Below, piece after piece: positions 422 through 30,893 of a stretch of DNA of 32,709 bases (position 1 is the stretch's first letter; every line of letters begins with the position of its first letter). The position numbers were made by a program, and so were the translations under genes. This DNA comes from Chlorokybus atmophyticus (Eukaryota > Plantae > Mesostigma and Chlorokybus algae), in contig RHPI01000977.1 in the NCBI GenBank assembly GCA_009103225.1, forward strand, positions 68,478 through 101,186, read 5' to 3'. The notes beneath the pieces were generated by a model. That model was given only the letters and a program-made list of their open reading frames with translations, ran no database searches and had not been told where the DNA came from.

Positions 422-1000
422 TCATGAGTTCCCATCGATGGCATTCAATTCGTCCAATGCGCGTTGTGTTGAAGATGGTGCAGCAGTTTTGTTATGTCTC
501 TCATACTGCAGCTCCAAGAACGTGTAGTACTCTGTCCGATTGTCTGCCTCAAGGTAATGTCGATTGCCAACAGGCCACTGCTTCCACAGCTCGAGCCGAT
601 AGTAGTTGGCAATGTCAATCGGCTCAACCATCAGGCGGAAAGTGTCGCCTCTTGCACACCAGAGATTGGACTTGTTGAAAAAGAAAGCAGGCAACATGCC
701 TTCCATGTAACGATTGTATGCTGAACGCCAGAAGTCCCGTAGAACCCTGTCATGTCAGGTTGGTCACCGCACGATGTGGAGGTCATACCAGTACTTAGCA
801 AGCCGTAAACTGCATTGAACTCAAACTGCAATGCATGTCGTCTGACCTGCATGCGTGTTTAACTGATTTCAAGCGCTCTGCTTGCGAGCTGTCATCACCG
901 TCACGATATGCTCTGAAGTCGGCGTAGTAGTCCGCAGAAGTCTGCGCAAAGGCTTGTATCGTTTCCATGGCAGCTTGTACCTCATTGCGCAACTTGTCAG
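422..1000 (-). other. EDS1/PAD4-type EP-like domain of copy 1
   Basis: AAMETIQAFAQTSADYYADFRAY...HACR|VLRDFWRSAYNRYMEGMLPAFFFNKSNLWCARGDTFRLMVEPIDIANYYR...HYLEADNRTEYY is colinear with the recalled PAD4 segment SMARIEWY...GYYDFFKRY...RIRLAKFW...LPFDF...W...YQLLAEPLDIANFYK...HYLEGNRPKRY. EPIDIANY is at 625-602. Confidence 0.8.
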
Positions 1001-1021
1001 TAAATTCTGTTTCATGTTTTC

Positions 1022-1337
1022 GCTGCTCGGCAATACGCGAACCGCCCACTGTCGGTGATTCCAAAGCTGCAAGGGTAAATGCATTGAGATTACGCGTGTC
1101 ATGTGGTAGGTCAACCCTGCATGTCAGATGCCAATCAGGCCGCAATGCAAACCTGGGCTGCATGGGCTGCATGAAGGGCGGCTTCTGCTGCTCGGTGATA
1201 CGCGAACCGCCCACTGTCGGTGACTCTGAAGCGCTGCAAAGGTAAATACACTGAGACTACGCATGTCATGTGGTAGATCAACACTGCACGCTAGATGCCA
1301 ATCAGGCCGCAATGCAAACCTGGGCTGCATGAAGGGC
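1022..1337. repeat. Tandem duplication, 2 copies, period 165 bp, each carrying an 86-nt intron copy
   Basis: The unit gctgctcgg..atacgcgaaccgcccactgtcggtga...gcaatgcaaacctgggctgcatg starts at ~1022 and ~1187. Intron copies are at 1319-1234 and 1152-1067. Confidence 0.9.
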
Positions 1338-2110
1338 TGAACACTTCCCAAGTGTTTGACGAGGGTGTCGTACCCAACCCAGGTTCCCTATTGCACGCAG
1401 AACCAGAAGACCCGCGGAATTACTTAAGCACACGTCATTTAAAACTATTTTGACTAGGTGCATGCTGCAAGGTCTCGCTCGTTCATTGAGAAGTGTGCAC
1501 AGCTTGGAGCAAATGCACTACACTCTTTGTAGTGTTTGAAACTTGCCTGCTGATCGCCAAGGGTAAAGTAGTTAAAATTTCCGGATCTGTGCAGGTACGT
1601 GCTTTCTGTCTCGAGGGGCCTGGAAGACGACTGGAACCAACCAGCCAGAGCGGTTCTGCTCTTCGTAGACCTTGGTTAGTATGTTCGTGTACTCGTCGTG
1701 CGTTCCTGCTCCCAATCTGTCAGCTGCAGTCGGCGTTTTCAGTGAAACCGTTCGTAATGCTCGTCACAAGCAACGATCACCTGCAATGTCACGAGTACAA
1801 CCAGCAAACCGATCAATGCATGGCTGTTGTGCAGGCGTGCCTGCTGACGGCATGAGATGCGAGAAGTTGGGATTGTCTGATGACGGCGACCACGCGCAAG
1901 GTGTTCTACACTTTGGAGACGATGTGACAACAAGTACCTTTGTGCCATCGTTTGAACATTTGACCAATAAGAATCGGCCATGACTGGTTTCCAATTTTGT
2001 AGTCGACAATGACGTCTATATTGTCTTGTTGCAGTTGCTCAGCAAGCCTCCGCACACGCTCTGCATGATGCTTGTCAAACTGGCAGTAGCTGATAAACAC
2101 AGTCAACTTG
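1320..2110 (-). other. SEFIR domain of copy 1 (three exons)
   Basis: TVFISYCQFDKHHAERVRRLAEQLQQDNIDVIVDY...SWP...|VIVACDEHYERF...GAGTHDEYTNILTKVYEEQNRSGWLVPVVF...VPAQIRKFNYFTL...|WVGYDTLVKHL resembles the recalled prokaryotic SEFIR consensus (VFISYS.DS..H...V..LA..L...GIDV..D; V..VC...Y..R; G.G...E; K.IPV.F; Y..L; GY..L...L). Confidence 0.75.
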
Positions 2111-2268
2111 GCCTCTGACGCCGCGGACGCTGCCTTTGTAGCCTCTTGTCCCTGTCCGCTATGTGCCACAGCACATGCAAATAACCATAAGCATGGTACC
2201 TGTAGTACAACACTTGCCGCACATGGCATGTGTGCATGATTTGCAACGAAAGCTATAGCAAAACTTAC

Positions 2269-3524
2269 GCAATAGCAGCATGGTTGACAGCCGCTGCCGC
2301 CTCCACCTCCGCCTTCGTCTCCCGCAGGTGCTGCTGCAGCACAGCAAAAACAGCAGGATCCAACATACTGAAAGATTTTGGCAGTGCCTTCAAGTGGGAG
2401 CACCCGTCCAGTTTCAGCTTTCGCAGTGCAGAGAGCTTGCCAAAGGACTCCGGCAGCACCGCCAAACTGTCGCACCAGCTTAGGTCCAGCTCACGCAAAG
2501 CAGCGAGCTTGCTGAAGGACTCTCCCAGCACTGCCAAGCGGTCGCACGCGCTCAGATTCAGCGTTTGCAGATTGTTCAATTCGCCGAGGGACTCCCGCAG
2601 TGCCTCTAGGCTACCGCAATAGCTCAAGTCAAGCGTTTGCAGGGCAACGAGACTACCAAAGGACTCCGGCAGCTCCGCCAAACTGTTGCAATTGGTCAGG
2701 TCCAGCATCTGCAGGGCAGTGAGTTTGCCAAAGTACTTTGGCAATGCCGCCAATCTTTCGCAACTTCTCAGGTCCAGCGTTTGCAGCATAGCGAGGTTGC
2801 CAAAGGATTCCGGCAGCTTCACCAAGCTGAGGCTATTGCTCAGGTCTAGCGTTTGCAGCATAGCGAGGTTGCCAAAGGACTCCGGCAGCTTCGCCAAGCT
2901 GTTGCACTTGCTCAGGTCCAGCATTTACAGGGCAGGTTGCCAAAGGACTCCGGCAGTGCCGCCATGCTGCCGCAATAGCTCAAGTCAAGCGTTTGCAGGG
3001 CCACGAGACTACCAAAGGACTTCGGCAGCTCCTCCAAGCTGAGGCTTTACCTTTAAGTCCAAGTCCTGAAGGTGCATGAGATCTCCTACAGACTCGGGTA
3101 GCTTGTGCAAACCGGTTCTAGAGAAAACTAGAGTCTGTAGCATAGCGAGCCCGCCAAGCGCTTCAGGCACATTCATCAGAGGTTCACAGCCCCGCAGCAC
3201 CAGGATTTGCAGCGCCTTGAGGTTTCCAATGGACTCAGTCGCCACCATTGAGACATCAACATGAACGGTTTTTTCTACAATTAGAATCACTAATGTAGTG
3301 CACGCAGCGGCATTATACAAGAAACTGCTCAAGGCGGAACAGCGTGGACGTCTCCACTCGAGATAGACCAGCTCTCTACGGACCCTATTGGGAGCGTGAA
3401 GTGTGCCATCCCAATCAGTTGTGCCAAGGTCTAGCATGCGGAGGCGAGGCATGAAGGCCATGCCACGTAATGTTTCGCTCCAGTTGAGTCCAGCCCAGGA
3501 CACAGTCTCGGCTTGTTCAGAGCC
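2269..3524 (-). other. Leucine-rich repeat region of copy 1
   Basis: About ten 24-aa repeats of the type LQTLDLSxCxSLxxLPESFGxL (ORFs 2265..2924 and 3009..3530), typical of TNL LRRs. Confidence 0.93.
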
Positions 3525-3711
3525 CTGCATACAACAACAGCATGCCTAAGATCAGCAGTTCTCACGCGCTCACTTCCAACAGCCATGCTGTCACATACTC
3601 TTGAAACACCGTGGGTTGCACGTTTTTGCTGGACGCATGCATGCAACCTTCACAAGCCAGTCAAAAGGACATGAGATGAAGGAACCAAGCTGGAGCGTGG
3701 CATACATGCAC

Positions 3712-4983
3712 CTCTTGAAGTAATGTGCTTGATTCCTTTGGCAACCAGATGTGCTTGGGCGGGTTGGCTCGACTGGCAATCATTCGCCCCATGTCGCGAA
3801 GTTGGCCATGTACCAAAAAGCAGATATTGCCTTGTGCACCCAATGAGAATGGCTTGTACTGGTCTTGTCTCCATACCAAGCGAATAAGGGACAATTCCAC
3901 CAGGGTATTCACTTATAGTGCCGCGCCCTTGCCCCACGCTGGAAGCAGAAACTTTTCATTTTTCCCAAATGCGAAGCAGCAGATGTCCAGAAACACTCGC
4001 TGATAAGTGGGCTCTAGGTAATTGTAGCTGAGCTCGAGCGTTTTCCACAACCGGTTATCCTTGGTACCTTCAAGCCCCTCTGCCTTTTGCAATTGATCCA
4101 GTGCGTCTTTCCAAAACTGCACATCACTGTTGCTGCTGCGCTTGTGAAGAAAGGATCCCACGACCTCGAGCGCGAGTGGCAGGCCTTGACACGCCTGGAT
4201 AATATCGTTGGCGATTGGCTCCAACTTCACAGGCACGGTAAGCAATATGCCAGGTTCAGTGAAGGCATAATTGTTGAACAGTTCTCTAGCCGGCTGATCG
4301 TCGAGCAGCAGCACCTCCTCCACCAATGTATGCTTCGCATGCCCCTTCAATAACTGGTGATTACAGAGGTCACCAGCACACGACTGCCTAACAACACGAT
4401 ATTGAGTCAGTCGTGTAGTGTCAGCCTTATTGTGTCAGTCTCACTGTGTAGGCAATGATCCACTGGTAATGTGCCTTACCGGTACCCAGCAGAGGGCTGT
4501 CTCCCCAAAAATTGCAACAACCGAGGAGGGCTTCTTTCTGATCCTCGCTCCAGACGTCATCAACAAAAAGCAGCACCTTCCGCCCTTGCAAGCGGTTCTT
4601 GAGAATTGCCTTTCCTTCATGAATGGAGGTCAATGCCTCTACAGGCTCACTCCCCAGCTTTTTGAAGCATTTGTTGTTGCAGCTGTACCAGCTTCCCGTT
4701 CTCTTTACATGCATCTTTTTCGACCGCTACAATGCAGCAGCTGCCTGGGAATTTGCTGTACAGGCTGTTGTAAACTGCTATTGCAAGTGCAGTCTTTCCG
4801 ATACCGCCAATGCCATGAAGACCCAGCATGATGACCTTGCTTCCAGCGGCAGCAGCATTCAACTTGTTGAGTACAGCTTCAACGCGCCTGTCAATGTCCA
4901 CTGGATGTTTGGCGACTTCCAAGCGGGGGGGTAGCCTTCTCAGCACGCCTGACACCACTGCATCTACTAAAGCAGTCCTGGTA
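3712..4983 (-). other. NB-ARC domain of copy 1
   Basis: P-loop GLHGIGGIGKT (~4792-4815), kinase-2 LLFVDDVW (~4549-4575), RNBS-B GSRVLVTS across the 4480/4387 splice, GLPLAL (~4168-4185), LELSY..L...QRVFLDICCF, and MHD-equivalent VHGQLRDMGR (~3790-3815). Confidence 0.93.
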
Positions 4984-5070
4984 CTGCCAACAAAGAGCAG
5001 ATGTTGAAAACATTGCCGCAATCATGATGACAACGGCATCACAACACGAACCAGTGACAACCCAACTCAC

Positions 5071-5661
5071 GGTTATTGATTGACCCTCCAGCCCGGTCTG
5101 TTGAACGCCTCCTCTACCGCCGTGCGATATTCAAGTTGATTTTGGACGTATAGGGTCTCACCGCGCTGGCATGCGCTGAAAACACACAACATGCTGGTCA
5201 TGATGGAAATCCTGCTGATTGCTGGCGAGTCTAGGAGAAAAGGTAAACTATACTGCCAGTACAGTGTACCCACCTGTGAATACTTTCCAGGATTATGGCT
5301 TTGAGATCGTCAAAGTCATCATAGAAGATAGGCATGATTTGATGTTTCCTGGACTCTCCAACATAATGCGCAGCTCCTCTAGGCAGTAGCAGGATTTCCC
5401 GTATCGACGAGAAAGGACAGGCATCTTGATGCGAGCGGACCGCACATTGGCAATGATGACATCCCAAGCTCCGTTGGTTTCCCCGGGCTGCAAGCTGAGC
5501 TCGTCCACGAAGCAGGTGATTCCAACTCTGTCAAGCATGCGATGCAGATAGTCAACAAGATTGTTCTTGACGTCAGGCCCTCTATGGCTCAGGAAAACGT
5601 CGCAGGGAGAGTGAGGGATAGTCTTTGACAGCGGCATATTGTCTCCGTCTGCAACACGCAA
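5071..5661 (-). other. TIR domain of copy 1
   Basis: DVFLSHRGPDVKNNLVDYLHRMLDRVGITCFVDELSLQPG...PVLSRRYGKSCYCLEEL...IMPIFYD matches plant TIR motifs (DVFLSHRG.D, SxWCLxEL, PIFY). The catalytic Glu position (CLEEL) is retained. Confidence 0.92.
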
Positions 5662-6099
5662 GTTGACTGGTCAGTGGGCTCATGGAGCATTATTTGCTGG
5701 AGGGAAATGCCGTCTGGCGATCAGCTGGTGAATAAGGGAGCTGCACAGGATCGATACAAACCGCAACGCACACCAACATGTCAAGCACATTTGAGTAGTA
5801 GTCGTAGTGTTGGTCAACAACCTACCGTTGAGGTTTGCATTGGGGGCCAAAGGTTTGTTCATTACGACCTGCAGCCAGCTCCTCCTCCTTGCTGGCCTGC
5901 AGCGGGACAAACCGAATTGTCATGAGCTTGAGACGCCTGTAACGCACAGTGACATGCAACCATATACATATACATATACATATACACCATCATTCGATTG
6001 GAGTCACTAGGTGTTTGCCAGCAGAGTGCAATATATTGCACACTGATGACAAGAAGTGTGTGCGCACACTGCATGCATGTGGTTTCCAAGCAAGTCGCT

Positions 6100-6730
6100 A
6101 GCCAGAATTCCCATCCGCGAATGCCAAGCAAGCCCAAAAGTAATTGTACTGAGTACCAAACACGGTTGCAGGTGAGTTCGACTCTCTACACGCAACGCCT
6201 CGCAAACAATTACTCGCAATGAGGTTGCGACCTAGCACCATACTATACTGAACAACTGACATGCAGCAGAGAGTGCTCGCTTGCACATGCGCTTCAATAT
6301 GGCCAAGCTCATTGCCTGCCAAGCTGGTGGCGCGGCGCTGGACGGCAGCACCAGCTGCTGGCGGCCAGCACCGCCAACTTACACCCAGTGCCATGCATGT
6401 TTGTCAAGCACTGCATGGCTACCTGAGTGTAGCTAACTTGCTGCCATGCTGTTCTGGCATTCTTGCTCGCCGCATCTAGCGTCCGCACACGACCATCAAC
6501 CCACCTTCGCCCGGTGCGCTGAAGTCAGCTGTCTTCAGCTGTGCTTTGGGCTCCTTCCATCCAACGCTCGTGTCCTCCCGCAGGTGGTGCGGGGCGGCAT
6601 CGCCCCTCAGCTCCGGCACCTCCACGCCCCGCCCCTCGCCTTCCGCCGCTGCCCAGCGCTCGCTCTGGTGCATGTCTGTGCCACCCGCCGCGTCCTCCAA
6701 GGCTGACGCGGAGCCAGGTACACTGTACCT
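6100..6730. repeat. Upstream block of TNL copy 1, inverted-homologous to ~20100-20660
   Basis: Shared motifs include caccttcgcccggtgcg (~6502 and reverse complement at ~20290), agcaccgcca.ctt.cacc and tctacacgcaa. Boundaries are approximate. Confidence 0.75.
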
Positions 6731-8069
6731 GACAAAGTGCCGCGGGCGGGAGCAGATCCGGCTCAATAAACAGGTGAACGGCATCGAACCTGTATGCATC
6801 AATGAATCATGGAATGGGTTGGGGTTGTCTTGACCTGTGAACCAGGAGACGGATGCCACCAGTGGTAGCCTGACAGTGCTACCACTGGTAGGCCTATACA
6901 CAGATTAAAATTAGAAACCATGGCGTATACCTCACATGCTCGTATACAGGGCTCCCGAACTCTTATCATGCCATCAATGCAAGCCTATCAGATGATCGCG
7001 TATCATAACATGAAAGCACATTATGCTGCACATGACATGACAGGCTATAATGAGAAGTTGATAAGGGTTTGGGAGCCCTACCATACCCCAAGTTCAATGC
7101 AATGCATGTGCATAGGCCTAGCACTGCTATCAAGGATAGCCTGCACGCATAAAGCAACTTAGGCCTAAGTGCGGGGCAGCCGCGGGCTCCATCCTGGGCC
7201 GGAGAATTCTGGCTCGTTTGAGTCTTAACAGTCGATGCTCAAGCTTGTTTGCTTAATTGCCCGGCGGCACGGCACGGTACAGCACGGCACGGTGCGGTGA
7301 GGCGGTGGGGGGCGGGCTGCAGGGTGTGCCCGCCGCAGGGCTGGAAGGGTTCTCCGGGAAGGAGGGGTGAGAAACTCAGCGCAGCAGGCGCCAGCTTCGT
7401 CCGTCAGCGCCATGCAGGGAGGCGCTGGTTAGCAAACGCAAGCGGCGCAGCTGGAAGCTATCACGCTGACCGTCTGACGTAGATGGCTGAAACTGCAAGC
7501 AATGCTTCCGCCTTCCGCAGGTGCTCTGCAGTTAGACTCTATCTGCAATGCCTCGCCACTGCTGCCTGCCCTCCACAGAGCTTGTAGCTGAACCAATTCC
7601 TCACAGCTCGTGAATGAGCATGTGTACCGCACAAAGTACCACAGGCTGATCAGCGCCTATGTGTTTTCATGCATGCGTCCGTGTACATAGCCGCATGTGT
7701 GTGTGTGTGCATGCATGCGTCTATGGACACGGACGCAGGCATGCACACTCATGCGCGCGCGCACACATGATTAAACACACATCTTCACATACAAGTCTAT
7801 ATATATGAACATGTTTGCTTCTTGCAGCCATTCAGTACTTTTAGCTGCTTGTGCGCAGCACCGTAACTTACGGTGAGCATGCTGTGGTATTTGAGTATGT
7901 GCAGTTGCTCTGTTGTCAACGTCATTAGGGCCATACTGCAGGCAGCAACAGTAATAGCTTGGTGCAGTTGCAGAGCAAGAAATTGTCGGGCACGTTGTAA
8001 ACTGTTGAACAGAAGAATCACATTGATACAGTCTGCTTCTGTAGTATTGAACTCAGCTAACAACTCTTG

Positions 8070-8070
<1 letters not shown>

Positions 8071-8165
<95 letters not shown>

Positions 8166-8166
8166 N
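8071..8166 (+). repeat. Poly-C run (95 C) ending in an N
   Basis: Seen directly. The terminal N suggests a contig join, so the length is unreliable. It lies at the position homologous to the poly-G near 18714 and 19124. Confidence 0.95.
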
Positions 8167-8259
8167 ATTCTTTGATAGGAGTTGGGCGCACTGCACCCAT
8201 TGTAAGGCTGGCCTGCACTGCGCTTGGCTGAGCAGCACAACCAGAAGCGCTTGCTTGAG

Positions 8260-8985
8260 ATGGACCGATTGGTGATTCGGAGGCTGCCTGCAGTGCTAGC
8301 TGCTGCTACATCCATTGTTACTGGTGCCGGCTACTGGAACCACACATATCTCAATTTGGACGCTCCTTATGATGCTGCTATGGTGTAAGTTCAACTACAG
8401 CTTTCCTTGTAAAGCAAGCAGAGCATTCCTGTTGCGACAAAATGCTGCACCATGCTCATAAGATTTTGCATGTGCTGCGGCAAGTAGCGGGCAGGGACGA
8501 GAGGCAACAGGGGCACTGTCCGCGACGCCAGCGGCAATATTGACAGCAATCATCAGCTGCTGCCAGTTTGACAACCAAGACAAAGAGCGCGGAGACTTGC
8601 CGAGCAACTGCAACAAGACAACATAGACGTCATCGTGAACTTCAAGAACCAGTACAAGTCATGGCCGGCTTTCATTGCAGATGCTGCCGGCACAAAGGTA
8701 GCACTTGTCACATTATTACTGGTGGTGAACACCTTGCGCATGGTTGCTGTCATCAACAAACCCCAACTTCTGGCATCTTATGTAGTAAACAGGCACGTCT
8801 GCATGATAGCGATGCATGCTGTGATTTGCAAATCGCAATTGTTCTCATGATGCTTTAGGTGATCGTAGCCGTGTGATGAGCATTATGAGAGATTTTAATT
8901 CAGGAGCCGACCGCAGCTGATGCATTGGGGGCGGGGATGCACGACTACTACACAACGTACTGAACAAGGTTTATGAGAAGCTGAG
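8260..8985 (+). pseudogene. Decayed signal-anchor-SEFIR gene (paralog of 16716-18563), no EP part found
   Basis: Exon 1 MDRLVIRRLPAVLAAATSIVTGAGYWNHTYL...|gtaagt is homologous to MGGLASLRLHAVLAAAAAIVAVAGYWKHTHL. It is followed by ISCCQFD...EQLQQDNIDVIVNFKNQYKSWPAFI...GTK|VIVA.CDEHYERF...GAG.HDYY...NKVYEK with several frameshifts. Homology ends at ~8985. Confidence 0.85.
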
Positions 8986-9710
8986 GTAGTTGGTTCTAGT
9001 TGTTATGTTTTGTAAACAAATGCTTCTACACATGCAGACTTGCCTACCACTCTAGACACTCCAGACACTCTAGACATATGTACACCGGTTGTGTAGCGCT
9101 TCATGCTCAACTATAGGCTTTCCAGTGGCTCCTTGCAAGCAAAGCATCATCACACCAGCACAGCAAGCACACGCACAGCCATCAGCACAAGACTCTATGA
9201 CACGCACTCTTACACCCACACGGTCACAGACACGCTCACTACCAACACATGGTGCATTAAGTACGAGAAAGTTTTGTCAGGCATCCTTGGACTTATGTGC
9301 ATAACAAAGGGCAGCACTTGGTCAGCAGGTGCACCTGCTGTGCACCTGCTCACCAAATGACTGCTTGCTGCAACATGCTTTGCATGTACTTGTCGCCAAG
9401 GCATGACATGACAGATCATCTTCAGCTATCTTTGTCGCAATCACTAAGCTGGAACATATTCACACAATCTATTAATTACCTCAGCTCTGACGTTTGCCCC
9501 ACCCTTATCCACACACCGTTAAATGGCATATTATTCGGATGCCAATGACCATCATGCTGTACACGCATATTGGGTTGCATTATATGCATGCACACGAGCA
9601 GTCGATGTGCATCTCATATAAGTATCTACGTGTTGAAACTGTTCGCAGATAAAGGCTACTATGTCTCCTCACTGCCTCGCAGATTGGCAAGTGCGAGGTG
9701 GATTCAACAG

Positions 9711-10412
9711 TCAGAGAGATAGGATTACTACCCAAATGAGCCTCATCCTCCTTAACAGCTTGCGAAGTGACGTTGATGTTCCCGCTTTCTCATCAGAGAG
9801 CCGATGAGCCTCCTGCCTGAGGTCATCATCAGGCTCCCGGGCCCCTCTCACCCCAGCAGTGACGAGCTCCTCTAGTGCGTTGTCGATTGAGCTCTTATTC
9901 CTCTCAGGGTACGCATTGCGGTATGCCTGCTCCAGCAGGTAATAACGCCGCGGCCGCACAACAGCCTCAGCAACCGAGAGACGAAGGTAATGCTTGCCGT
10001 TGGAGGCATAAAAATTCGCACCCTTTTGAGAATACCAGTTGGCAATGTCGATGGGCTCCACCAGCAACCGGCGAGCCAGTTGCTTGTGGAAGAAAGAATG
10101 TCCTCTGGGATGGAACCGCGCTCGTACTGCGTTGTAACCCAATCCCAAAAGTTTTTTCAGTTTACCCCGAGCTCTCTCAATCTGTGGTGGCCGGTTCTTT
10201 TTGAAGCCAACATAGTAGTCCTGTTCGTCCTGGTACTGCTTGATAACATCCATCGCGTCATCAACACTATCGTACTTCATGGACAGCTCTGCTGTCTGCC
10301 TGTTCCGAGCATCTTCCCTGTTGCGCACAAACGCGTAGAGTCCATACAGGAACCCGAGCAAGCCAACCAGACAGGCGAGGATGCTGGGCCAGGGAGGCGC
10401 TTGTTCAGCCAT
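9711..10412 (-). CDS. Intronless 233-aa protein: N-terminal TM helix plus EP-like domain plus hydrophobic C-terminal tail
   Basis: Open frame from ATG 10412 (MAEQAPP) to the stop at 9711. Hydrophobic SILACLVGLLGFLYGLYAFV, then DAMDVIKQY...DYYVGFKK...RARGKL...RRLLVEPIDIANWYS...KHYL...RPRRYYLLEQAY (EPIDIA at 10058-10041). Ends RRMRLIWVVILSL. An upstream in-frame alternative start exists at 10487. Confidence 0.85.
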   Translation of the reverse strand: MAEQAPPWPSILACLVGLLGFLYGLYAFVRNREDARNRQTAELSMKYDSVDDAMDVIKQYQDEQDYYVGFKKNRPPQIERARGKLKKLLGLGYNAVRARFHPRGHSFFHKQLARRLLVEPIDIANWYSQKGANFYASNGKHYLRLSVAEAVVRPRRYYLLEQAYRNAYPERNKSSIDNALEELVTAGVRGAREPDDDLRQEAHRLSDEKAGTSTSLRKLLRRMRLIWVVILSL

Positions 10413-13400
10413 ATGTAGGTTGTAATGAGCCCCACGCGTGCATGCGCTCTCGTGCCCCTTTGCACAGCAGACTTTAGCACTGCGCATGCCAGCGAGTGTT
10501 AGTGTTGGTGTTCAACTACTGTCCAACCGATCCTATTGCCGTGGAGCGGAGATATTGCAACGCCCCTCAGCAGTGCGAAACGCTCCTGCCAACCAAACAG
10601 CATGCCAGACTAACTCAATGTGTGCATGCTGGCGAGCCAGATCAGCTTGAAGGGGTAAGCTGCCCTAAATCAGCACCAGCCCAGCCAAGCTGCGGCGACT
10701 CGGACTGGCAATAGTTTCATGCTACTCAGTTCAGCTGACGAGCAGAAACCATGACGCTACTCAGTTCAGCTGGCGAGAATGGTGGCGGCAACAGCTCTCG
10801 GACATGTTCACATCATGGCTTTACGTGAACCGCGCTAAACAACGTGAAATTGAAAGTCAGAAGCTAAAATGTTCTCTACAGCGGCTAGGATGGATCAAGC
10901 AATGTCAGCATTACAATGCTACGCCGGTATGCATGCATGTAAGCCAAGATTGAGCAAGCTTCGCAAGCTGTCACTGGCACTGGTGGATACACAAACAGGC
11001 AGCGCTAGCACGGACGGCTTCTTGCACCTTTTGGCTAACAAGCCGCACCAACCTCTTACGAGGTTAGGCTTCAGGCTTCCTTGCTCCAGCAAGCTCTGGA
11101 GATTGGGGACAGCTTCAGAGCCATGACACTGCGTCCAACTGACCCAGCCAGCAACCTCGGCGACCTACAGCAGCGCTCCTTTCTTCAGGCGCAAGCAGGG
11201 GTTGCCCTTACCCTTAGCCCTTCAGTGCAACGGCAGCGTCGCCGCTCACCCCCTCCTCCCTCCCGCCCCACAGCGTCAACACTGGCTCAGTCTAACGCGA
11301 GAACTCCGTCTGAGAGGTAAGATAAAGTCTTGCGGCAAGCTTGACTTTCTCTCATCGGCTACAGGTAACAAGATTCGTGTCACACGAAACATGTCGCCGG
11401 GTCATCAAGCACAAAATGGTCATAAAACAATGTCGCCTTCTGACAAAGTCTTTTTCACAAAGGTTGGACTGACAAGCATGGGCTCTGTTGGTTGGGTTTT
11501 ATTGACCGAGCCGTGAGGCGTAAGTTGGTGTTGGTGCGAGCTATGCTACAGCCGCAACCTGAATGCCTGAATGCCGAGCTAGAGGTGGGCGGAGGAGCCT
11601 GCAGGGCTGAGCTGAACCGTCATGTAGGCCGCTCTGCTGCTGGGGATAAGTGGTGCAAGCCGCCCACTACGTGACAGCGACACCCCCCTTTTCCCGCCAG
11701 CCGGCTGCGCAGAGCACCAGCTAGCATTGGCCGCAAACATGCACGATGCCCTATGCCTTCTGCTGCTGTTCTCAAGTTTGGTGTAGGCTGCGCGTGTTTG
11801 CTGCAGCTATGACAAGCTGCTTGCTTGGGCATTACTGTTCAAACCAGGATTGAATGAGTCTAGCAGAAGTTGCGTACATACTACTTCAATGTAGTATGAT
11901 ACTACATCGAAGTGCTTACGTTGCAATGACTGCAGTTAGCATAGCAAGCTGCAGCTAATAAGGAGGTTTATTGGTGGCTCAGCAGCAAGGGTTCCTAAGC
12001 CACTTTCGTACCTGCAGACAAGGCTCTAGAAGTCATAGATCCTCGTGACGCTGCGAGGTACGTCTGCAGGTACGAGTGGCTCAATAGATTGAACTAGCAG
12101 TAACTGAAAGTAGCATTGACGCGCGAAGAAGTGACTAGCCCTCGTGATATAACTCTTGCACGAAGCTGTCATGTCACTGCTTGCATTCAGGATACGCTGC
12201 TGACAACGTGACAGCAGCCAGCTCGTTGCTGTCATGTTCTCCATCACCATCATGACAGCCCTGCATTCCGCGGCCAGCATACAGTTTTCGCATGTCTTCC
12301 ATGCTGCGTTTCGGTATCTGCTGAACGGTGCACAATAGCATCATACCTGGATCTTCAGAAATGCTGCACCCTTGAACACAATATAGAAGCAATGGTTAAC
12401 ATGACTTCAAGCCTTACCATTCATACATGCAGTCCCGCGCATACATCTCTGCACGTTCTCCCCATGCATACACTACTGTCTCTCTCTCACTGACATCTGT
12501 ACAGACTTGCACGCAGTCATGATCATGCACTTTCGCTAACACACCCATCCCACAACCACCTACATTCTTACACCCCCACACACATATATTCGTTTAATCT
12601 CACACTCCCAGACAACTGAAAGCTTGAGCTGATGTCTTTCAACAAGCTTTACAAAAGGGGAAGTTCTAATGGTGTACAACACCTGGATGCTTGCATGAAG
12701 AAGTGCATACGTGCAGTGTGGGGGAATGAGAGCATGAGACGCAGGATTTGAAAAGCGGCGGAGTGGGCGGCCAACCTGCGCTGCAGCGGTGCTGGTAAGC
12801 CTGGTAAGCCGAGGTGAAGGCAGCCAGCCGCCAGGCAACGACGATGACACCTACTTCATACACGGCGAAAACGACAAGGCTGCCGTCGCCCCTCCCCCGG
12901 CCAGCACGTCCGGCTAAGTCAATCTCACTTGCCTTGACTTTTTCCTCCTCGCTACACTAGTACAGACTTATGGGGTGGAGGAGAAGAATTGGTGTTAGTT
13001 GCAATGTTTGCGTGCGATGGACGATTGCGGGTTGGCGGATGGACAACGACCGAGGTTGGGCGAAGCCTAACAGATGAATGTCGATGGACGGCTGGCTGAT
13101 TGGGTGGTTCGAAACTTCTGGTCGCCACTGTTGTGTCTGTCAATTGAGCTGGAGCATGTCAACAACCGCAAAGCGAGCTCAGCCTCAGCCTGCTTGCATG
13201 TTAAAGCCAATCTCGAATGCATGCCTCACGAGCACACAAGCACAGTCACACGCACACGGGCGCACACACGCATCCCCCCGTCCCCCCTTTTATCCATAAG
13301 CCAACGTGACCTCTGTGCGCATGCTTACCTTGCCTGGTTGCAGTACCAGTTGGTGTTTTGTTGTCGCTAGTGGCGTTGGGAGAGAGATGGCTGCGGTAGT

Positions 13401-15650: not shown

Positions 15651-15712
15651 GCAGCTGATTGAGTGTCAAGTTAGACCAGACTACCCTAATGGTTCAGGTT
15701 TATGCTGGAGAG

Positions 15713-16334
<622 letters not shown>

Positions 16335-16715
16335 NATGCGCACGCAGCAAGCTCCAGCATACACTCGCACACGCACACAGCCGAGATCACCGTCGTCCAC
16401 ATGCACGCAGCTACAGACCTCTTCACATGCATGTCCGCACGTATATGCGCACACAGAGAGACACACAGTGACGCACACACATGCAGGTATGCGCTCAGGC
16501 TTGAGTATGAGCACATCATGTCATGCACATTTTGTATAAATGCTTAGGCCCGTTTAGACATACACATGCAGACTCAAGTGGACACATATGCAGGCTCGCA
16601 AGGCTCTTCCAGCGTTCAATCTAATATAACCTGTTTTCTCAAGCTTAATTTGAGGTTTCGTCTCGTGACAAGGTAGAGTACACCTTGTCAAAAGGCGAGA
16701 GGAAGGCACCTCAAC

Positions 16716-18563
16716 TCATGAGCTCCCTTCGATGGCGTTCATCTCGTCCAATGCGTGTTGTGTTGAAGACGGTGCATCACTTTTGTTATGTTTCTCATAC
16801 TGCAGCTCTAAGAACGTGTAGTACTCTGGTCGGTTGTCCGCCTCAAGGTAATGTCGATTGCCGACAGGCCATTGCTTCCACAGCTCAAGCCGGTAGTAGT
16901 TGGCAATGTCAATTGGCTCAACCATGAGTCGAAAACTGTTGCCTCTCGCACACCAAACATTGGACTTGCTAAAAAAGTCAGCAGGCAACATGCCATCCAT
17001 GTGCCATTTGTACGTAGTACGCCAGAAGTCCCGTAGATACCTGTCAGGTTGGTGGGGGGGTTACATCAGTACTTAGCAGTTTTTCACTTTGCAATGAACT
17101 TGAACTTGAACTTGCAACTGCAATGCATGTGACCTGACCTGCGTGCGTCCTCGACTTTTTTCAAGCGCTCTGCTTGCGGGCTGCCATCACCGCCACGATA
17201 TGCTCTGAAGTCAGCATAGTAGTCTGCAGAGGTTTGCGCAAAGGCTTGTATCGTGTCCATGGCATCTTGTGCCTCATTGCGCCACTTGTCAGTAAACTCA
17301 GTTTCATGTCTCCGCTGCTCGACGACACTCAAAACGCCCATTCTCGGTGACTCTGAAGCGCTGCAAAAGTAAACGCACTGAGACTTCACTTGTTATGTGG
17401 TATCAATATGTCGTATCAACACTGCATGTCAGACGCCAATCAGGCCGCAGTGCAAACCTCTGTGGCATGGGCTGCACAAAGGCCGGAACATTTTTCAAGT
17501 GCTTGACGAGGGTGTCGTACCCAACCCAGGGAGCCTATTGCACGAGGATAGGAACAGAAGACCCGCGGACTAATTAAAGCAGCACATCATGGAATACTAC
17601 GTTGAATAGGTGCATGCTGCAAGGTCTAGCTCGTGCATCAAGGAGTGTGCACAGCTTGGAGCACCTCACTCTTTGAACTTACCTGATGACCACCAAGGGT
17701 GAAGTAGCTAAATTTCCGGATCTGCGCAGGAACATCCTTTCTTGCTCCAGGAGGCCGGAAAACGACTGGTACCAACCACCCGGAAAGGTTCTGCTCCTCA
17801 TAAACCTTGTTCAGTATGTTCGTGTACTCGTCGTGCGTCCCCGCGCCCATCTTAACAGCTGCGGTCGGCTGCTTTAATGAAAACCGCTCATAATGCTCAT
17901 CACAGGCCACGATCACCTGAAGCGTCATGAGAACACCCTCAAGCCAAGCATGCCTTGCTGTGATGCAGACGAGCCTGCTTTTTGACAATGTTGAAAGCAA
18001 ATTGCGGGAATTGTTGGTGACAGCGACCATGCGCAAGATTCACGACCAGGAATGATGTGACAACCGGTACCTTGGTGCCATTGTTCAACATCTGCCCAAC
18101 AAAAGCCGGCCAGGACTGATACGTATTTTTGTAGTCGACAATGACTTCTATATTGTTTTGTTGCAGTTGCTCGGCAAGCCTCCTCACACGCTCTGCGTGA
18201 TGCTTGTCGAACTGGCAGTAGCTGATAAACACAGTCATCTTGGCCTCTGGTGCCGCGGACAGTTCCCCTGTAGCCGCTCCTCCCTGTCCGCTATGTGCCA
18301 CAGCACATGCAAAGTACCATAAGCATGGTACAGCATCGGCAAGAAAGAAGCTTGTGCATGCTTTGCATAGAAAGCTGTAACAAAACTTACGCAACAGCAG
18401 CGTTGTTGACAGCAGCTGAGTCTTTTTCCTTATACGTATGCTTATCCTGGTGTTGTAAACTACCCGGGTGGAGATGCGTGTGCTTCCAGTAGCCAGCGAC
18501 AGCGACAATGGCTGCAGCCGCAGCCAGCACTGCATGCAGCCTCAGAGATGCCAGCCCGCCCAT
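16716..18563 (-). CDS. Intact 6-exon signal-anchor-SEFIR-EP protein, 416 aa
   Basis: Exons 18563-18391, 18290-18071, 17916-17683, 17534-17458, 17360-17139, 17040-16716 (173+220+234+77+222+325 = 1251 nt). All introns are GT-AG, phases are compatible and there is no internal stop. Protein: MGGLASLRLHAVLAAAAAIVAVAGYWK...TVFISYCQFDKHHAERV...GAGTHDEY...WLVPVVF...GYDTLVKHL...DYYADFRAY...RRYLRDFW...LPADFF...FRLMVEPIDIANYYR...HYLEADNRPEYY...EGSS*. An assembly gap lies upstream, so a further 5' exon cannot be excluded. Confidence 0.88.
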
Positions 18564-18652
18564 CTCAAGACGCTTCCACTTCTTCTACAAAGCCGAGAGC
18601 GGTGCAGGCTAGCCTTACAAATAGGAGGAGCAAGCCCAGCTCCTGTTCCAGT

Positions 18653-19136
18653 TGAGTTCATTAGCCATGCCCAAACCCACCAAGCGCTATACAGCTGCGG
18701 AAGACCAAAACGAGGGGGGGGGGGGGGGGGGGGNNNNNNNNNNNNNNNNNNNNNNNNNNNNNNNNNNNNNNNNNNNNNNNNNNNNNNNNNNNNNNNNNNN
18801 NNNNNNNNNNNNNNNNNNNNNNNNNNNNNNNNNNNNNNNNNNNNNNNNNNNNNNNNNNNNNNNNNNNNNNNNNNNNNNNNNNNNNNNNNNNNNNNNNNNN
18901 NNNNNNNNNNNNNNNNNNNNNNNNNNNNNNNNNNNNNNNNNNNNNNNNNNNNNNNNNNNNNNNNNNNNNNNNNNNNNNNNNNNNNNNNNNNNNNNNNNNN
19001 NNNNNNNNNNNNNNNNNNNNNNNNNNNNNNNNNNNNNNNNNNNNNNNNNNNNNNNNNNNNNNTGAGTTCATTAGCCATGCCCAAACCCACCAAGCGCTAT
19101 ACAGCTGCGGAAGACCAAAACGAGGGGGGGGGGGGG
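18653..19136. other. Assembly gap (N 18734-19062) flanked by an identical ~70-bp sequence ending in poly-G
   Basis: tgagttcattagccatgcccaaacc...gaccaaaacgagggg occurs at 18653-18733 and again at 19063-19136, typical of unmerged contig ends. Confidence 0.85.
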
Positions 19137-21120
19137 ACAACTGCTGTCAGCTGAGTAAGAATTACCATGAATGTCACGGTAATTTCTGCAGTTCAGAAAC
19201 TTGCACGACTTGCACGACAGCAGCTGCACAAAACGAAGCCAGTACTGTTACTGCCGCCAGTAAGGCCCAAATACCATTGACAACAGAACTTCTCATGCTT
19301 AGGTGCTACAGGATGCTTGCCCTAAGTTACACGGACGCTGCTGCACACAAGCAGCTATATAACTGAGTGGCTGCAAGGGGCACATGTTCATGGCGTTGTG
19401 AAGTTTTGTGTGTCTGTGCGCACAAGTGTGTGCATGCGTATGCATACATACACAGGTGCATGCATGCATGCACGCACACGCACAGGCGCGCGTCAGCATG
19501 TGTGCTGTACGTACAGATGCTGTTGCGCGAGCTGTGAATTTGGTTGAGCTAGAGAAGCTTTCTGGAGGGCGGTCAAGCATGAAAAAGTGGGGCAACCCGG
19601 GGGGTGGGGGTAAGTGCGTGGGCACAACAAATTCACAAAGACGGTAGCAACGGCATTGCAGCGCACCTGCACAAGAAGGCCGAACTCTAAGCTATGCTTG
19701 CGGAGGCAGTAGCCATCTCCGTCAGACTGCGGCGTCAGAGTTACTGCTAACCAGCGCCTCCCAGCATGGCACTGACGGGCTGACAAAAGCTGGCAACCTG
19801 ATGCGCTTTGCGCCCTCCCCCTCCCGGCAAGCCCCTTCCAGCCGCCGGCGGCGCAGCCGCTACACCGCCTAGCAGTCCGTGCCGCCAGTACACAATACTG
19901 GCATATCTACCACATGCAATACTGTATGACCATAACAACAACTTATACTCTTGACAAGGAATGAGGATGCCAGGAGTCCTGGCCGAGCGCACGCATGACA
20001 TGAGAATCTCACATTTCATGACGAGATAGGGTTGTCTAAGAAGCCCAATGTTGGTTTGATCGTGTCAACTCAAGTGCATTTTACATGCTTACACCCTGTT
20101 AGGGGTTACACGTAAGCTGGACGCGCGGTACCTGACTCTGCGTACGGCTTGGGAGCGGACGGCATGGACATGGACATGGACCGGAGCAAGCGGGCGGGAA
20201 GGGCGGGGTGGGGCGAAGGGGCGACGCCTCCTTCCTACGGACAAGATAAGGTGGGACAAGCGTATAAGCCAAGCGCAGCTGCATTCCCCGCACCGGGCGA
20301 AGGTGCGTTGCCGTCACGCCGTCCAACTTTGTGTGGTTGTGTGCGCTGCTTGCACATATAAAAGCAGCATGCCATATGCAGAACAGAAATGTAATGCTTG
20401 ACTTGCATGGCTCGCTCGGTGCAAGCTGGCGGTGCTTGCCGTGGTCGGCAGCGCCATGGCAGGGAATCGACTTGGTTACAGATTCCGAGCGCATGCGTCA
20501 GTGAAGTCACTTCACTGGATGTCAAACATCTAGTTTATTGTCTGCTAGGCCGCAGCCTCATTAGCACCAAGTCGGTACGAGTGGCCGTTTACGAGACATT
20601 GCGTGTAGATTGAAACTCGCTTGTAGCCGTGTACAGTTCTTGGTTCTTGGCTACACTTACTCTTGCTTGGTGCATTGTTGAGAAAGGGTTGCGCACGCAA
20701 TTGCTGTGGCTAGAGACTGCATGCGTAGGTAGCACAAGCACACGCTTCCTGTCATCCGTGTGCGGTCCATTGCATTCCGCTGGAAAGCACCGTGCAGTTA
20801 TATCTAAACATCGGCAGCCTATACATGTGGTTGCGTGCGTGTCATGGTTGCGCACAGGCATTGTGAGCTCAAGTATTATGTATTGCTGCAGGCTACCAAG
20901 GGGGAGCTTGCTTTGATGTCTCAATGTTTGCTTCAGTTGCAAATCAGGACGGTACGCCGGGGAACAACACATACGCGCCTTGATTGTGGTGCTGCATATG
21001 CTGCGCATGTGTTTCGCGCTATTCTTTGCAGCTTATTGTGCAAGAAGGTTATAAGCCATCAAGTGCCATCTACTACAGTCACCATGAGTCCACTGACAAA
21101 CTTACATATTGCACATCACA

Positions 21121-24017
21121 GGCAGATGGACTCCATCAAAGACCATCCCTCACCCTGGCAGTGATATTTTCTTGAGCCATAGAGGGGACGTCAAGAGGAA
21201 CTTTGTTTATTTCCTAAGCCACCTTCTTAAGCAAGCAAGTGAGCATGACCTGCTTCGTGGATGAACTTAGCTTGCAGCCTGGGGACAAAGCCTGGTTTGT
21301 GATTACCGGCAATGTATGGTCCGCTCGTATAAAAATGCATGTTCTATTGTGTAACTATGGGGACTCTTGGTACTGCTTTGAAGAGCTGCGAATTATGATG
21401 GAGGATGCAGAAAACATCGTCAAGCCCATCTTCTTTGATGATAACTTTGACAGCCTGCAAGCCATATTTTAGGAAAGTAAAAGCAGGTGAGTAGATTTGT
21501 ATACATACACACTGTCGCTCATTAAGGTAGACATGTTCCTGGTTGCAAACATGTTTCGTGCTTGCAGCGCATGCCTCAATGGTAAAGAGGAATACATCCA
21601 AAACAAATCGGCATACTGTGATGCGCTTGATATAGCATTTACAACAACGGTTCTTCATGCCTTGGCTCCGCATGCTAGACCTTGCTACAACTGATTGGGA
21701 TGGCACACTTCCTGTTCCCGACAGGGTCCGTTCAGAGCTGGTCTATCTCGAGTGGAAACGCCCGCGCTGTTCAGCCTTGAGCAATTTCTTGTGTAATGCC
21801 GCTGCATGCCAAAACTTGGTCGTCCTAATCATAGAACAAGCCGTCCATGATCATGCCTCAATGACAGTGGCTAAGTCCATAGGAAACCTCAAGGTGCTGC
21901 AAATTCTGGTGCTGCGCGGTTTTTATGATTTGAACGAGCTGCCTGAAGCGCTTGACGGGCTCACTATGCTATAGACTTTAGTTCTCTTCAGAACTGGTTT
22001 GCACATGCTACCCGAGTCTGTTGGAGGTCTCATGCATCTACAAAAACTGGACCTAGCATTAGCCTCAACTTGACGGCGCTGCCGGAGTCTGCAAATGCTG
22101 AACCTGAGCAAATGCAACAGCTTGGCGGCGCTGCCAAAGTCTTTTGGCAAACCGGCTGCCGTACAGACGCTGGACCTGAGCAAGTGCGACAGCTTGATGG
22201 CACTGCCGGAGTCCTTCGGCAAGTTGGACAACTTAGAAAACGCTGAACCAGAGCGCGTGCGACTACTTGGCGGTACTGCAGGAGTCCTTCAGCAAGCTCG
22301 CTGCTCTGCGTGAGCTAGACCCAAGCTGGTGCGCGAGTTTGGTGGCGCTGTCGAAGTCTTTTTGCAAGCTCACTGCTCTGCACAATCTGAAGCTAAACGG
22401 GTACTTCCATCTGAAGGCGCTGCCAGAAATCTTCAGTGCGCTGCATCCTGCTGTTGTTGCTTTGCTACAGCACCAGCAGGAGGCGAAGGCAAAGGCCTCG
22501 GCCGCTATCGATAATGCTGCTACTGCTGTGCAGCAGCACCAGCAGGACGCGGAGGCCAAGGCCGAGGCCGCTGTCAACCATGCTGCTACTTCGTAAGTTT
22601 AGCATGGCTGTCTTCGCAAACCATGCGCAAACTCTTGTGCGGCAAATGCTTTACCATGCTTATAACAATTTGCGTGTGCTGCGGCATATAGCGGACAGGG
22701 AAAAGAGGCGAAGTTGACAGTATTCATCAGCTACTGCCCCTTTGACAAGCATCACGCAAAGCGTGTGTGGAGGCTTGTTGAGCAACTGCAACAAGATAAA
22801 GTACCCGTCATTGTCGACTACAAATCTGGATACCAATCATGGCCAGCTTTTATTGGGCAGATGTTTAAGGATGGCACAAAGGTACCAATGGTCACATCAT
22901 CTCTGATAGTGTAGAACATCTTGCGCATCGTGGCTGTCATCATCCATTCCCATCTTACATAGATTATATAGTAAGCAAGCACGTGAGCATGACAGACATG
23001 CATGCTTGGTTTCCGGTTGTTAACATAACGTTTCAGGTGGTGGTGGTTTGTGATGAGCATTATGAGCGATTTTCATCAAAACAGCCACCCGCAGCCGATA
23101 GGATGGGCGCGGGGACGCACGACGAGTACACGAACATACGAAACAAGGTTTATGAGGAGCAAAATCTTTCCGGGTGGTTGGTTCCAGTCATCTTCCGCCC
23201 CCCCGGAGAAAGAAAGCACGTACCAACGCTCATTCGAAATTTGGCTACTTCACCCTTGGCGATCAGCATGCAAGTTTAAAGGGGGAGGTGCATTTGCTTC
23301 ACGCTATGCAAACCTTTATGCACGAGCAAGACTTTGTAGCATGCGCTCAGTCTTTCTGAATGGTCTTACATGACGTCTGCGTTAGTAACTCCGTGGCTCT
23401 TTCGATGCCATCCTCATGCAATGGTAACCCTGGGCTGGGTACGACACCCTCATCAAGCACTTGGGAAGTGTGCCGGCCTTCATGCCCATGTCACACAGGT
23501 TTGCATTGCAGCCCACTTGACCTGCAGTGTTGACCTACCATGACATCCATAGTCCTAGAGCATTGTATATTGCAACGCTTCAGAGCCACAGAGAGTGGTC
23601 GAATCGCGTATTGCCACGCAGCAAAGCCATGAAACAGAGTTTGCTAACATGTGGCGCAAGGAGGTATAAGACGCCATGGACACATAACAGCCTTTTTGCT
23701 GACCTCGGCAGACTTCTACGCTGACTTCAGAGCATATTATGGCAGTGATGGCAGCCCGCAAGCAAAGCGCTTGAGAAGGGTCGACCGTGCACGGAGGTTA
23801 AGATTTGCGCAATTGAACGCTTGCTCGGTACTGTTATGACCTCCCCACCAACCTAACAGGGTTACACGGGACTTCTGGCGTATAGCATACAAGTGGTACA
23901 TGGATGGCATGTTGCCTATTTTTTCAGCAAGTCCAGTGTTTGGTTTGTGAGAGGCAACACGACGCGACTCATGGTTGAGCCCATTGACATTGCCAATTGG
24001 GCTCGAGCTGTGGAAGA
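21121..24017 (+). pseudogene. TIR-(NB-ARC deleted)-LRR-SEFIR-EP(truncated) relic, copy 2 of the fusion NLR
   Basis: TIR DIFLSHRG.DVK...TCFVDELSLQPG...SWYCFEEL...KPIFFDD. TIR exon 2 runs out of frame directly into MPWLRMLDLATTDWDG at ~21650. Shortened LRRs, SEFIR exons (22700-23490), and EP up to LMVEPIDIANW (23977-24000). Many stops and frameshifts. Confidence 0.9.
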
Positions 24018-27393: not shown

Positions 27394-27488
27394 CAACACG
27401 ATTGTTATCACCATCATTACCTCACATCGCTCTCATGCCAATCAGCGTTTTCTCTCCCTTCTACCCTTCACTTACATTATCATCAACG

Positions 27489-30863: not shown

Positions 30864-30893
30864 CGTGCCTGCTACTCTGCCCGATGGGCACTG

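Follow-up and report, generated by a model that had tools for sequence, protein, structure and literature searches.

A stretch of 32,709 nucleotides of the alga Chlorokybus atmophyticus (assembly GCA_009103225.1, contig RHPI01000977.1, positions 68,478 to 101,186), referred to here as the window, holds a cluster of immune-type paralogues centred on a shortened EP domain of the EDS1 type that comes without the lipase part. The EP similarity is true homology to the EP domain of EDS1, PAD4, and SAG101. [quoted passage not shown] We give an even chance to the reading that the EP-like domain is the receiver of a signal made by TIR or SEFIR domains. TIR signalling without EDS1 in algae, mosses, and ferns is treated as an open question in reviews (PMC10834447, PMC9153377, PMC9806590), and EP domains joined to SEFIR, TIR, and TIR-NB-ARC-LRR (TNL, where LRR is leucine-rich repeat) modules give that question concrete, testable proteins. 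They also bring a bacterial anti-phage subtype (bSEFIR) and a plant immune domain together in one polypeptide. If the wider version of this reading, set out below, is true, the "seed-plant-specific" EDS1 node would be an old Viridiplantae TIR-EP pathway.

An initial annotation, made from the letters of the window, had proposed four loci that carry the motif EPIDIAN with colinear flanking motifs, in three architectures, without a lipase-like exon and in a non-seed, probably algal, genome. In a six-frame search EPIDIAN occurs four times, at 605-625 (minus strand), 10038-10058 (minus), 16899-16919 (minus), and 23977-23997 (plus); by our estimate, chance would give a particular 7-mer about 5e-5 times in some 65,000 six-frame codons. 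The Pfam profile EDS1_EP (PF18117, cut-off 23.1 bits) scores above its cut-off on the locus 1 exon at 425-754 (minus, 37.5 bits) and the locus 3 exon at 16719-17060 (minus, 41 bits), and below it at 9714-10511 (minus, 21.2 bits) in locus 2 and 23857-24120 (plus, 17.4 bits) in locus 4. Both searches confirm the four loci and their colinear flanking motifs, and a fifth copy, an anchor-SEFIR fragment, is also present. The copies are as follows:

Locus 1, 422..5637, minus strand: TIR-NB-ARC-LRR-SEFIR-EP, colinear by Pfam on the exons
Fifth fragment, 8260..8900, plus strand: anchor exon and N-terminal half of SEFIR, with several frameshifts and stops
Locus 2, 9711..10487, minus strand: single-exon open reading frame (ORF) of 258 aa with an N-terminal membrane anchor and an EP-like domain
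Locus 3, 16716..18563, minus strand: the 416-aa protein P0089, with an N-terminal membrane anchor, bacterial-type SEFIR, linker, and EP-like domain
Locus 4, 21082..24120, plus strand: decayed TIR-(no NB-ARC)-LRR-SEFIR-EP copy

The three architectures are thus TNL-SEFIR-EP (locus 1), anchor-SEFIR-EP (locus 3), and anchor-EP (locus 2), and what did not stand is an anchor form for locus 4. The absence of a lipase-like exon held in full: tblastn of the window with the lipase+EP proteins P0069 and P0081 matches EP exons only, Lipase_3 has no match on any window frame scanned with Pfam, and the single GxSxG in the six frames of the window lies antisense to an LRR exon. The host is indeed algal. Locus 3 matches the Joint Genome Institute (JGI) Chlat1 model Chrsp235S03603 (P0089) at 100% across six exons, which identifies the window as a scaffold of Chlorokybus, an early-diverging streptophyte alga, and locus 3 as an annotated gene. 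The window has about 50% G+C and short open frames split by GT..AG introns, features that mark it as eukaryotic.

The homology of the EP domain extends well beyond the six-residue motif, as is seen in profile, sequence, and structure searches. The Pfam check that the initial annotation had recommended finds EDS1_EP at 37.5-42.7 bits along with SEFIR, TIR, and NB-ARC. A phmmer search with P0089 against all PDB chains ranks PAD4 best (7xdd_A, 7xey_B; E 1.6e-5, residues 300-387), followed by EDS1 (8zf0_B, E 0.006) and then SAG101. An AlphaFold2 model of P0089, built from 64 family sequences, has a predicted local distance difference test (pLDDT) of 85-98 in the EP part (residues 241-416) and 40-84 in the SEFIR half. 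In a Foldseek search of the PDB with the EP model, also recommended at the outset, every one of the top 23 matches is a chain of EDS1, PAD4, or SAG101, with OsEDS1 as the best (8zf0_B, E 1.2e-5, 173 columns, root-mean-square deviation (rmsd) 2.3 Å). Superpositions on EDS1 and PAD4 cover 150-175 residues at an rmsd of 2.0-2.7 Å, with best local alignments of 151-173 columns at 2.3-2.6 Å, and AlphaFold DB gives a match to AtEDS1 residues 366-504 at 2.0 Å. A feature search of the ESM Atlas with the EP part returned scores of at most 0.59, below the useful level. The EDS1_EP profile is matched from about position 6 to 122 of its 211 positions and never beyond about 122-138, the algal EP ends about 30 residues past RPxYY, and the C-terminal helices (AtEDS1 about 505-623) are absent; only the N-terminal two thirds or so of the domain, approximately AtEDS1 366-504, are present. 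A convergent origin of the EP domain, one of the two possibilities raised initially, is excluded by the sequence statistics. With homologues in algae, the origin of the EP domain moves back several hundred million years.

The best-conserved part of this shortened domain falls on residues that contact the ligand in EDS1. In the pRib-ADP complex D469, N472, and Y473 of EDS1 bind the 5-phosphoribosyl group and R493, K478, and R425 also make contact, while R314, K380, Y383, and F387 contribute from the PAD4 side (10.1101/2022.04.01.486681). Residues were mapped through an ungapped alignment of seed-plant EDS1 to the AtEDS1 chain 7xdd_B, in which EPLDIANY is E466-Y473 and RPTRY is R490-Y494, and the EDS1 contact residues map onto the EPxDIANY and RPxRY motifs. 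Counts in the 64-sequence family alignment are as follows:

E466: 63/64
P467: 59/64
D469: 54/64
N472: 55/64
Y473: 48/64, plus 11 Trp
R490: 61/64
P491: 57/64
R425: 32/45 (members having a residue there)
R493: 25/64

The most conserved columns of the family are E466, P467, D469, N472, Y473, R490, and P491 (48-63/64), and P0089 keeps the equivalents of EDS1 D469, N472, Y473, and R425. The contacts made by PAD4 show no such conservation in the family. By alignment, the family hallmark motif coincides with the phosphoribosyl-binding residues of EDS1, and a pocket of the heterodimer type appears incomplete.

The SEFIR domain to which EP is joined is, by profile and sequence similarity, assigned to the bacterial anti-phage type. 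P0089 scores 78.9 bits (E 1.6e-22) against the PADLOC bSEFIR profile and 13 bits against ThsB, no Thoeris TIR model coming near the bSEFIR score, and in P0089 and P0001 Pfam SEFIR (38.1-41 bits) outscores TIR_2 (35.8-37.7 bits). Bacterial SEFIR is an anti-phage gene that protects Bacillus subtilis from phage phi29 (10.1101/2022.05.11.491447) and is counted among NAD+-depleting systems (PMC11559045). A tblastn search against plasmids matches SEFIR proteins of Deinococcus, Bacillus, and Nostoc. The Deinococcus protein WP_249396465.1 shares 31% identity over 204 residues (pairwise E 2e-15), and this match includes the helix of the small fourth exon (GYDTLVKHL vs GYESLLRLL), which supports that exon. 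The similarity suggests a bacterial origin of the algal SEFIR exon set. The long PADLOC envelope on P0001 had raised the candidate that EP derives from the C-terminal domain of bSEFIR; it was rejected, with no BLAST or Pfam similarity and an hhalign probability of 0.1%. The closest SEFIR relatives in the plasmid collection are those of Deinococcus sp. QL22 (L003:2977-4362) and Bacillus cereus (L004:2971-4422), single-gene proteins that lie beside an integrase or a phage-type AimR gene.

Locus 3 provides the reference gene of the cluster, with these parts:

Approximate exons, 18563-18391, 18290-18068, 17919-17680, 17534-17461, 17362-17138, and 17042-16719, minus strand: stop codon at 16716-16718
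EP exons (two), 16719..17362, minus strand: P0089 residues about 235-416

The EP exons hold the DARR arginine (equivalent to EDS1 R425), EPIDIANY (E466-Y473), and NRPEYY (R490-Y494). Pfam gives P0089 42.7 bits for EDS1_EP, 38.1 for SEFIR, and 35.8 for TIR_2. The N-terminal hydrophobic helix of the AlphaFold2 model spans residues 4-23, P0089 and its paralogue P0001 open with an identical Met-Gly-Gly-Leu anchor, and the basic residues after the anchor predict a cytosolic SEFIR-EP by the positive-inside rule.

Locus 1 preserves the longest architecture of the window, in the following order:

TIR, about 5637-5234, minus strand: frame break near 5352
NB-ARC, 5021-3916, minus strand: assembly without a G after 4364
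LRR, 3545-3012 and 2924-2269, minus strand
LRR-to-SEFIR intron, 2159..2268, 110 nt, minus strand: GTAAGT donor overlapping the apparent stop, CATAG acceptor
SEFIR exons, 2158 to about 1935 (+1 near 1954) and about 1783 to 1575 (-1 near 1748), minus strand
EP exons, about 1070-846 and 748-425, minus strand: stop codon at 422-424

Between 5670 and 425 on the minus strand, the Pfam matches are TIR (42.4 bits), three pieces of NB-ARC, LRR (up to 106.8 bits), the start of SEFIR/TIR_2, and EDS1_EP. The TIR retains the CLEEL catalytic-glutamate motif. Two public runs (X1 and X2) that hold the window sequence, low-coverage and DNA-like, with contigs that continue through introns and show no splice joints at the predicted sites, carry an extra G after 4364 that has no counterpart in the assembly. 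Adding this G restores the RNBS-B motif GSRVLVTSRN and leaves the NB-ARC motifs intact. The assembly therefore contains at least one erroneous indel, and reads are needed to back any apparent frameshift. Gap-free contigs of the two runs cover the breaks at 5352, 1954, and 1748, the TIR break being present in both runs and in the assembly, so these are not assembly errors of the 4364 kind. The breaks at 1954 (+1) and 1748 (-1) are seen when the SEFIR exons are compared with those of loci 3 and 4, and the splice pattern of locus 3 leads to a stop here. An intact TNL-SEFIR-EP gene at locus 1 was considered and rejected on these three breaks; the locus is most likely a pseudogene. At 1022-1331 a tandem duplication of 167 bp (1.9 copies, 88% matches), which is not found in loci 3 and 4, spans the small exon between SEFIR and EP together with its donor site.

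The remaining copies show further stages of decay. In locus 2, a +1 in an A-run and a 13-nt deletion throw about 28 codons ahead of the EP motif out of the frame of the paralogue P0025, and the drop in EDS1_EP score from 55.6 bits in P0025 to 21.3 bits is tied to this frame scramble; the +1 in the A-run may be an assembly error. The fifth fragment is matched at 8260-8679 by tblastn with residues 1-114 of P0001. Locus 4 has indels of 1, 2, 4, 5, and 34 nt in its SEFIR and EP exons, including a 5-nt deletion directly after EPIDIAN at 23999, and consists of the following parts:

TIR remnant, 21082-21493, plus strand: frameshifted, recognised by blastn against locus 1
LRR, 21636-22592, plus strand: internal stops
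SEFIR exons, 22692-22893 and 23016-23246, plus strand
EP exons, 23574-23783 and 23857-24120, plus strand

The family extends beyond the window. Searched by phmmer in a set of 1.84 billion representative proteins, the EP exon of locus 3 gives 85 matches, the best of which are JGI Chlat1 models. Other Chlorokybus scaffolds encode an anchor-SEFIR-EP paralogue (P0001), an LRR-SEFIR-EP paralogue (P0003), and four anchor-EP paralogues (P0015, P0025, P0035, and P0060). P0004 (Chrsp5S06985) combines an anchor, EP, a canonical TIR (50.5 bits), a partial SEFIR, and a second EP, and is an independent EP-TIR fusion. The physical fusion of EP to TIR-superfamily domains that had been put forward at the start is accordingly found with SEFIR in P0089 and P0001 and with canonical TIR in P0004. 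Word-based searches for homologues, with P0001 and the SEFIR part of P0089 as queries, return only six Chlorokybus proteins, and the search with P0003, swamped by LRR proteins, gave no further LRR+EP protein.

The 85 matches are mostly short proteins, from metagenomes and run assemblies, many of them with an N-terminal hydrophobic helix, and one, from the trebouxiophyte Elliptochloris bilobata, bears the UniRef name "EDS1 EP domain-containing protein". Three independent contexts have EP-like genes with TIR or TIR-NLR genes as neighbours. In L007 (JGI 3300060284, Ga0590114_0002527) an anchor-EP gene at 10001-10663 lies amid three TIR-NB-ARC(-LRR) genes, all long intron-free ORFs:

168-1868: TIR-NB-ARC
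3989-8581: TIR-NB-ARC-LRR-Sel1
14551-17607: TIR-NB-ARC-LRR

In L001 (GCA_030012885.1, JASCQV010002970.1; 1715-6975) an EP ORF of 243 aa (60.5 bits) has a TIR ORF (65.6 bits) 4 kb away on the other strand; a chitin-binding CBM_14 ORF lies further along. The EP exon of both L005 and L006 is flanked by partial TIR exons, and 2.2 kb upstream of it, on its own strand, is a Lipase_3 exon (33.8 and 27.2 bits); the TIR ORFs of L001, L005, and L006 all lie no more than 4 kb from EP. A seed-plant EDS1 gives a colinear, single-strand alignment with L002:6800-10630, L006:7400-10450, and L005:7560-10240 and 18550-19970, first through the lipase-like regions GHSLGG, RHDIVPR, and PFGTY and then through the EP exon. 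L002 (Elliptochloris bilobata JALJOU010000074.1) is annotated at NCBI as two separate genes of 213 aa and 142 aa, and L005 is a tandem array with partial TIR exons nearby. By this alignment, L002, L005, and L006 look like EDS1-type lipase+EP genes in trebouxiophyte-type green algae. Four further EP contexts, L008-L011, have no TIR on record. One of these, L010 (ENA ERZ23498485 scaffold_24, 1-20561), has an EP-like gene of 186 aa amid ORFs of 400-1150 aa that have no Pfam match on record. In a maximum-likelihood tree of the EP core (107 columns) the Chlorokybus SEFIR-EP clade is sister to a lipase-linked chlorophyte clade (96/90) and the seed-plant sequences form their own clade (96/85); the backbone does not resolve which algal clade is nearest to seed-plant EP. 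The description of the system as ancestral, the other possibility raised initially, is not established by this tree.

A mechanism that would fit these observations is one in which the NAD-cleaving TIR or SEFIR domains make a ribose-phosphate nucleotide and the EP-like domain receives it. On binding its ligand the protein would alter its oligomeric state, and this change would switch on either the attached SEFIR, with NAD+ consumption as in bacterial SEFIR defence, or a membrane action through the anchor, with a cell-autonomous defence response as the outcome. SEFIR-EP would then be a sensor-effector fusion comparable to Thoeris ThsA, TNL-SEFIR-EP would hold signal maker, sensor, and effector in one chain, and the EDS1 heterodimers of seed plants, with their lipase part, would have elaborated this receiver later. 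Ligand binding, signalling, and the control of SEFIR by EP are here predicted from sequence. A wider version, in which the shortened EP is the ancestral TIR/SEFIR nucleotide receiver across green algae, SEFIR-EP is a Thoeris-like unit derived from a bacterial SEFIR, and EDS1 arose from an algal lipase-EP gene such as those beside trebouxiophyte-type TIR genes, is possible but doubtful.

Several observations weigh against a receiver role. The C-terminal third of EP and the lipase-like domain, which drives EDS1 heterodimerisation, are both absent, which precludes a two-protein cavity built in the manner known from EDS1-PAD4. At the position equivalent to R493 the SEFIR-EP clade has Tyr, and 25 of the 64 members have Arg; in P0089, V, A, and S take the places of PAD4 K380, Y383, and F387. 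The role of the conserved motif could lie in structure instead of ligand binding. The AlphaFold2 alignment contained four seed-plant EDS1-family sequences, and the model is not fully independent of them. In the SEFIR domain the bacterial GVGTE corresponds to GAGTHDE at a place where the alignment is ambiguous and the model poor (pLDDT 40-84), and neither the alignment nor the model allowed the catalytic glutamate to be mapped in the algal SEFIR. No TIR is on record in the EP contexts of L008-L011 and of Elliptochloris L002, and both runs holding the window sequence are low-coverage DNA. In the main rival, the EP-like domain would have no role with small molecules; it would be only a helical scaffold, or a module for oligomerisation, that domain shuffling among immune-type assembly domains joined to its partners, and EPxDIANY would serve folding. 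It is favoured by the partial EP, by the loss of PAD4-type contacts and of R493 in the SEFIR-EP clade, and by the action of SEFIR through SEFIR-SEFIR contacts in animals and bacteria, where a D40A mutant abolishes defence (10.1101/2022.05.11.491447). However, over more than ten divergent clades the best-conserved columns coincide with the phosphoribosyl contacts of EDS1, and the several unrelated contexts in which EP lies beside TIR genes speak more for a producer-receiver pair than for a generic scaffold. We regard the scaffold explanation as rather unlikely, somewhat below the wider version given above.

Two further alternatives concern the TNL-linked copies. The link between EP and an NLR would be a gene-model artefact if the TNL ended at the TAA at 2265-2267 and SEFIR-EP were a separate gene; the LRR frame does reach this stop, the 110-nt "intron" of locus 1 contains an ATG in frame, with a hydrophobic stretch after it, and a full-length TIR-NB-ARC-LRR-SEFIR-EP protein was not retrieved in the homologue searches. 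But the apparent stop is part of a perfect GTAAGT donor in each of loci 1, 3, and 4, and the frame into the SEFIR exon is restored by a CATAG acceptor about 100-110 nt further on (the counterpart introns are 18390-18291 in locus 3 and 22593-22691 in locus 4). P0003 joins its last LRR exon to SEFIR exactly there, P0089 uses the same intron between its anchor exon and SEFIR, and locus 3 has no ATG at the corresponding place. The LRR-to-SEFIR splice is thus a predicted junction to which both consensus sites and JGI models lend support. Separate genes in such tight conserved adjacency would still be linked, and the artefact, which touches the NLR link only, seems improbable to us. Still less probable is that SEFIR-EP in the TNL copies is an integrated decoy, copied from a free anchor-SEFIR-EP protein, and that the NLR guards rather than signals. 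The SEFIR-EP unit lies C-terminal to the LRR, the usual site of integrated domains in NLRs, and free SEFIR-EP genes (P0089, P0001) coexist with the fused form. About 30 nt of the end of the LRR exon survive upstream of the donor in locus 3, followed by the same intron, which argues for recent exchange between fused and free forms, the anchor form having arisen from the NLR-linked form, or the reverse, by exon replacement. Against a decoy, no Chlorokybus pathogen or effector is known and the fused copies in the window are decayed. A decoy would also need a signalling role for the free proteins, and it would supplement the receiver reading.

The continuity of the window bears on none of these readings. 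Its Ns are at 8166, 16335, and 18734-19062, and each adjoins a homopolymer or microsatellite; the assembly breaks at low-complexity DNA:

8071-8165: poly-C of 95 C, beside the N at 8166
15713-16334: (TC)311 microsatellite, beside the N at 16335
18734-19062: assembly gap, no strand, intergenic between the divergent loci 3 and 4, with poly-C at its left edge

With 171 bases separating it from the start codon of locus 3 (18563), the gap lies upstream of that gene and inside no exon; since no exon spans it, no part of the finding depends on continuity across it. Further along, the window holds a piggyBac-type transposase fragment (DDE_Tnp_1_7, 87.4 bits) at 26187-26753 (plus strand), with a 73/145-bp tandem repeat downstream of it at 27484-27911, and long ORFs without a Pfam match at 25121-25903, 27346-28008, 29562-30530, and 30864-31484.

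In the literature, EP proteins are placed in seed plants only and the family is defined by lipase plus EP (PMC10834447, PMC9153377, PMC9806590), and helper NLRs of the RPW8 type are likewise seed-plant-specific (PMC9153377, PMC10834447). "Short EP-like sequences" in green algae have been mentioned (bioRxiv 10.64898/2026.05.20.726525), so that EP-like sequences in green algae are not wholly new, and the Chlorokybus gene models have been public since the genome release. Our literature search found no paper describing fusions of EP with SEFIR, TIR, or TNL. It found no paper on SEFIR in Chlorokybus, the papers that concern Chlorokybus and EDS1 do not describe these proteins, and a survey of non-flowering NLRs does not mention them.

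Among known systems, the closest likeness is to EDS1, PAD4, and SAG101, with which the algal proteins share a homologous EP of about 150-175 residues, the EPxDIANY helix, and the RPxRY element, and both are genetically tied to TIR proteins. Unlike the EDS1 family, the algal proteins have no lipase-like domain and hence no LLIF-type heterodimer interface; P0089 and P0001 carry SEFIR where the EDS1 family has the lipase-like domain, and the algal EP is fused to SEFIR, TIR-NLR, or an anchor and is missing its C-terminal third. The likeness to bSEFIR (Millman et al. 2022, 10.1101/2022.05.11.491447) lies in the same SEFIR subtype, with 25-31% identity to the Deinococcus and Bacillus proteins, and in a single chain with a C-terminal helical domain of about 200 residues. 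In bSEFIR, however, that C-terminal domain is unrelated to EP (hhalign 0.1%, no Pfam match), whereas the algal gene has five introns and an anchor or NLR in front. Locus 1 resembles plant TNLs in its TIR (CLEEL), its NB-ARC (P-loop, kinase-2, RNBS-B, GLPL), and its plant-type LRRs, in the usual order, but it is frameshifted and adds a C-terminal SEFIR-EP, for which no report in an NLR was found among the papers searched. With Thoeris, in which ThsB is the signal maker and ThsA the sensor-NADase, the resemblance would be one of proposed logic only; EP is unrelated in sequence to SLOG and SAVED.

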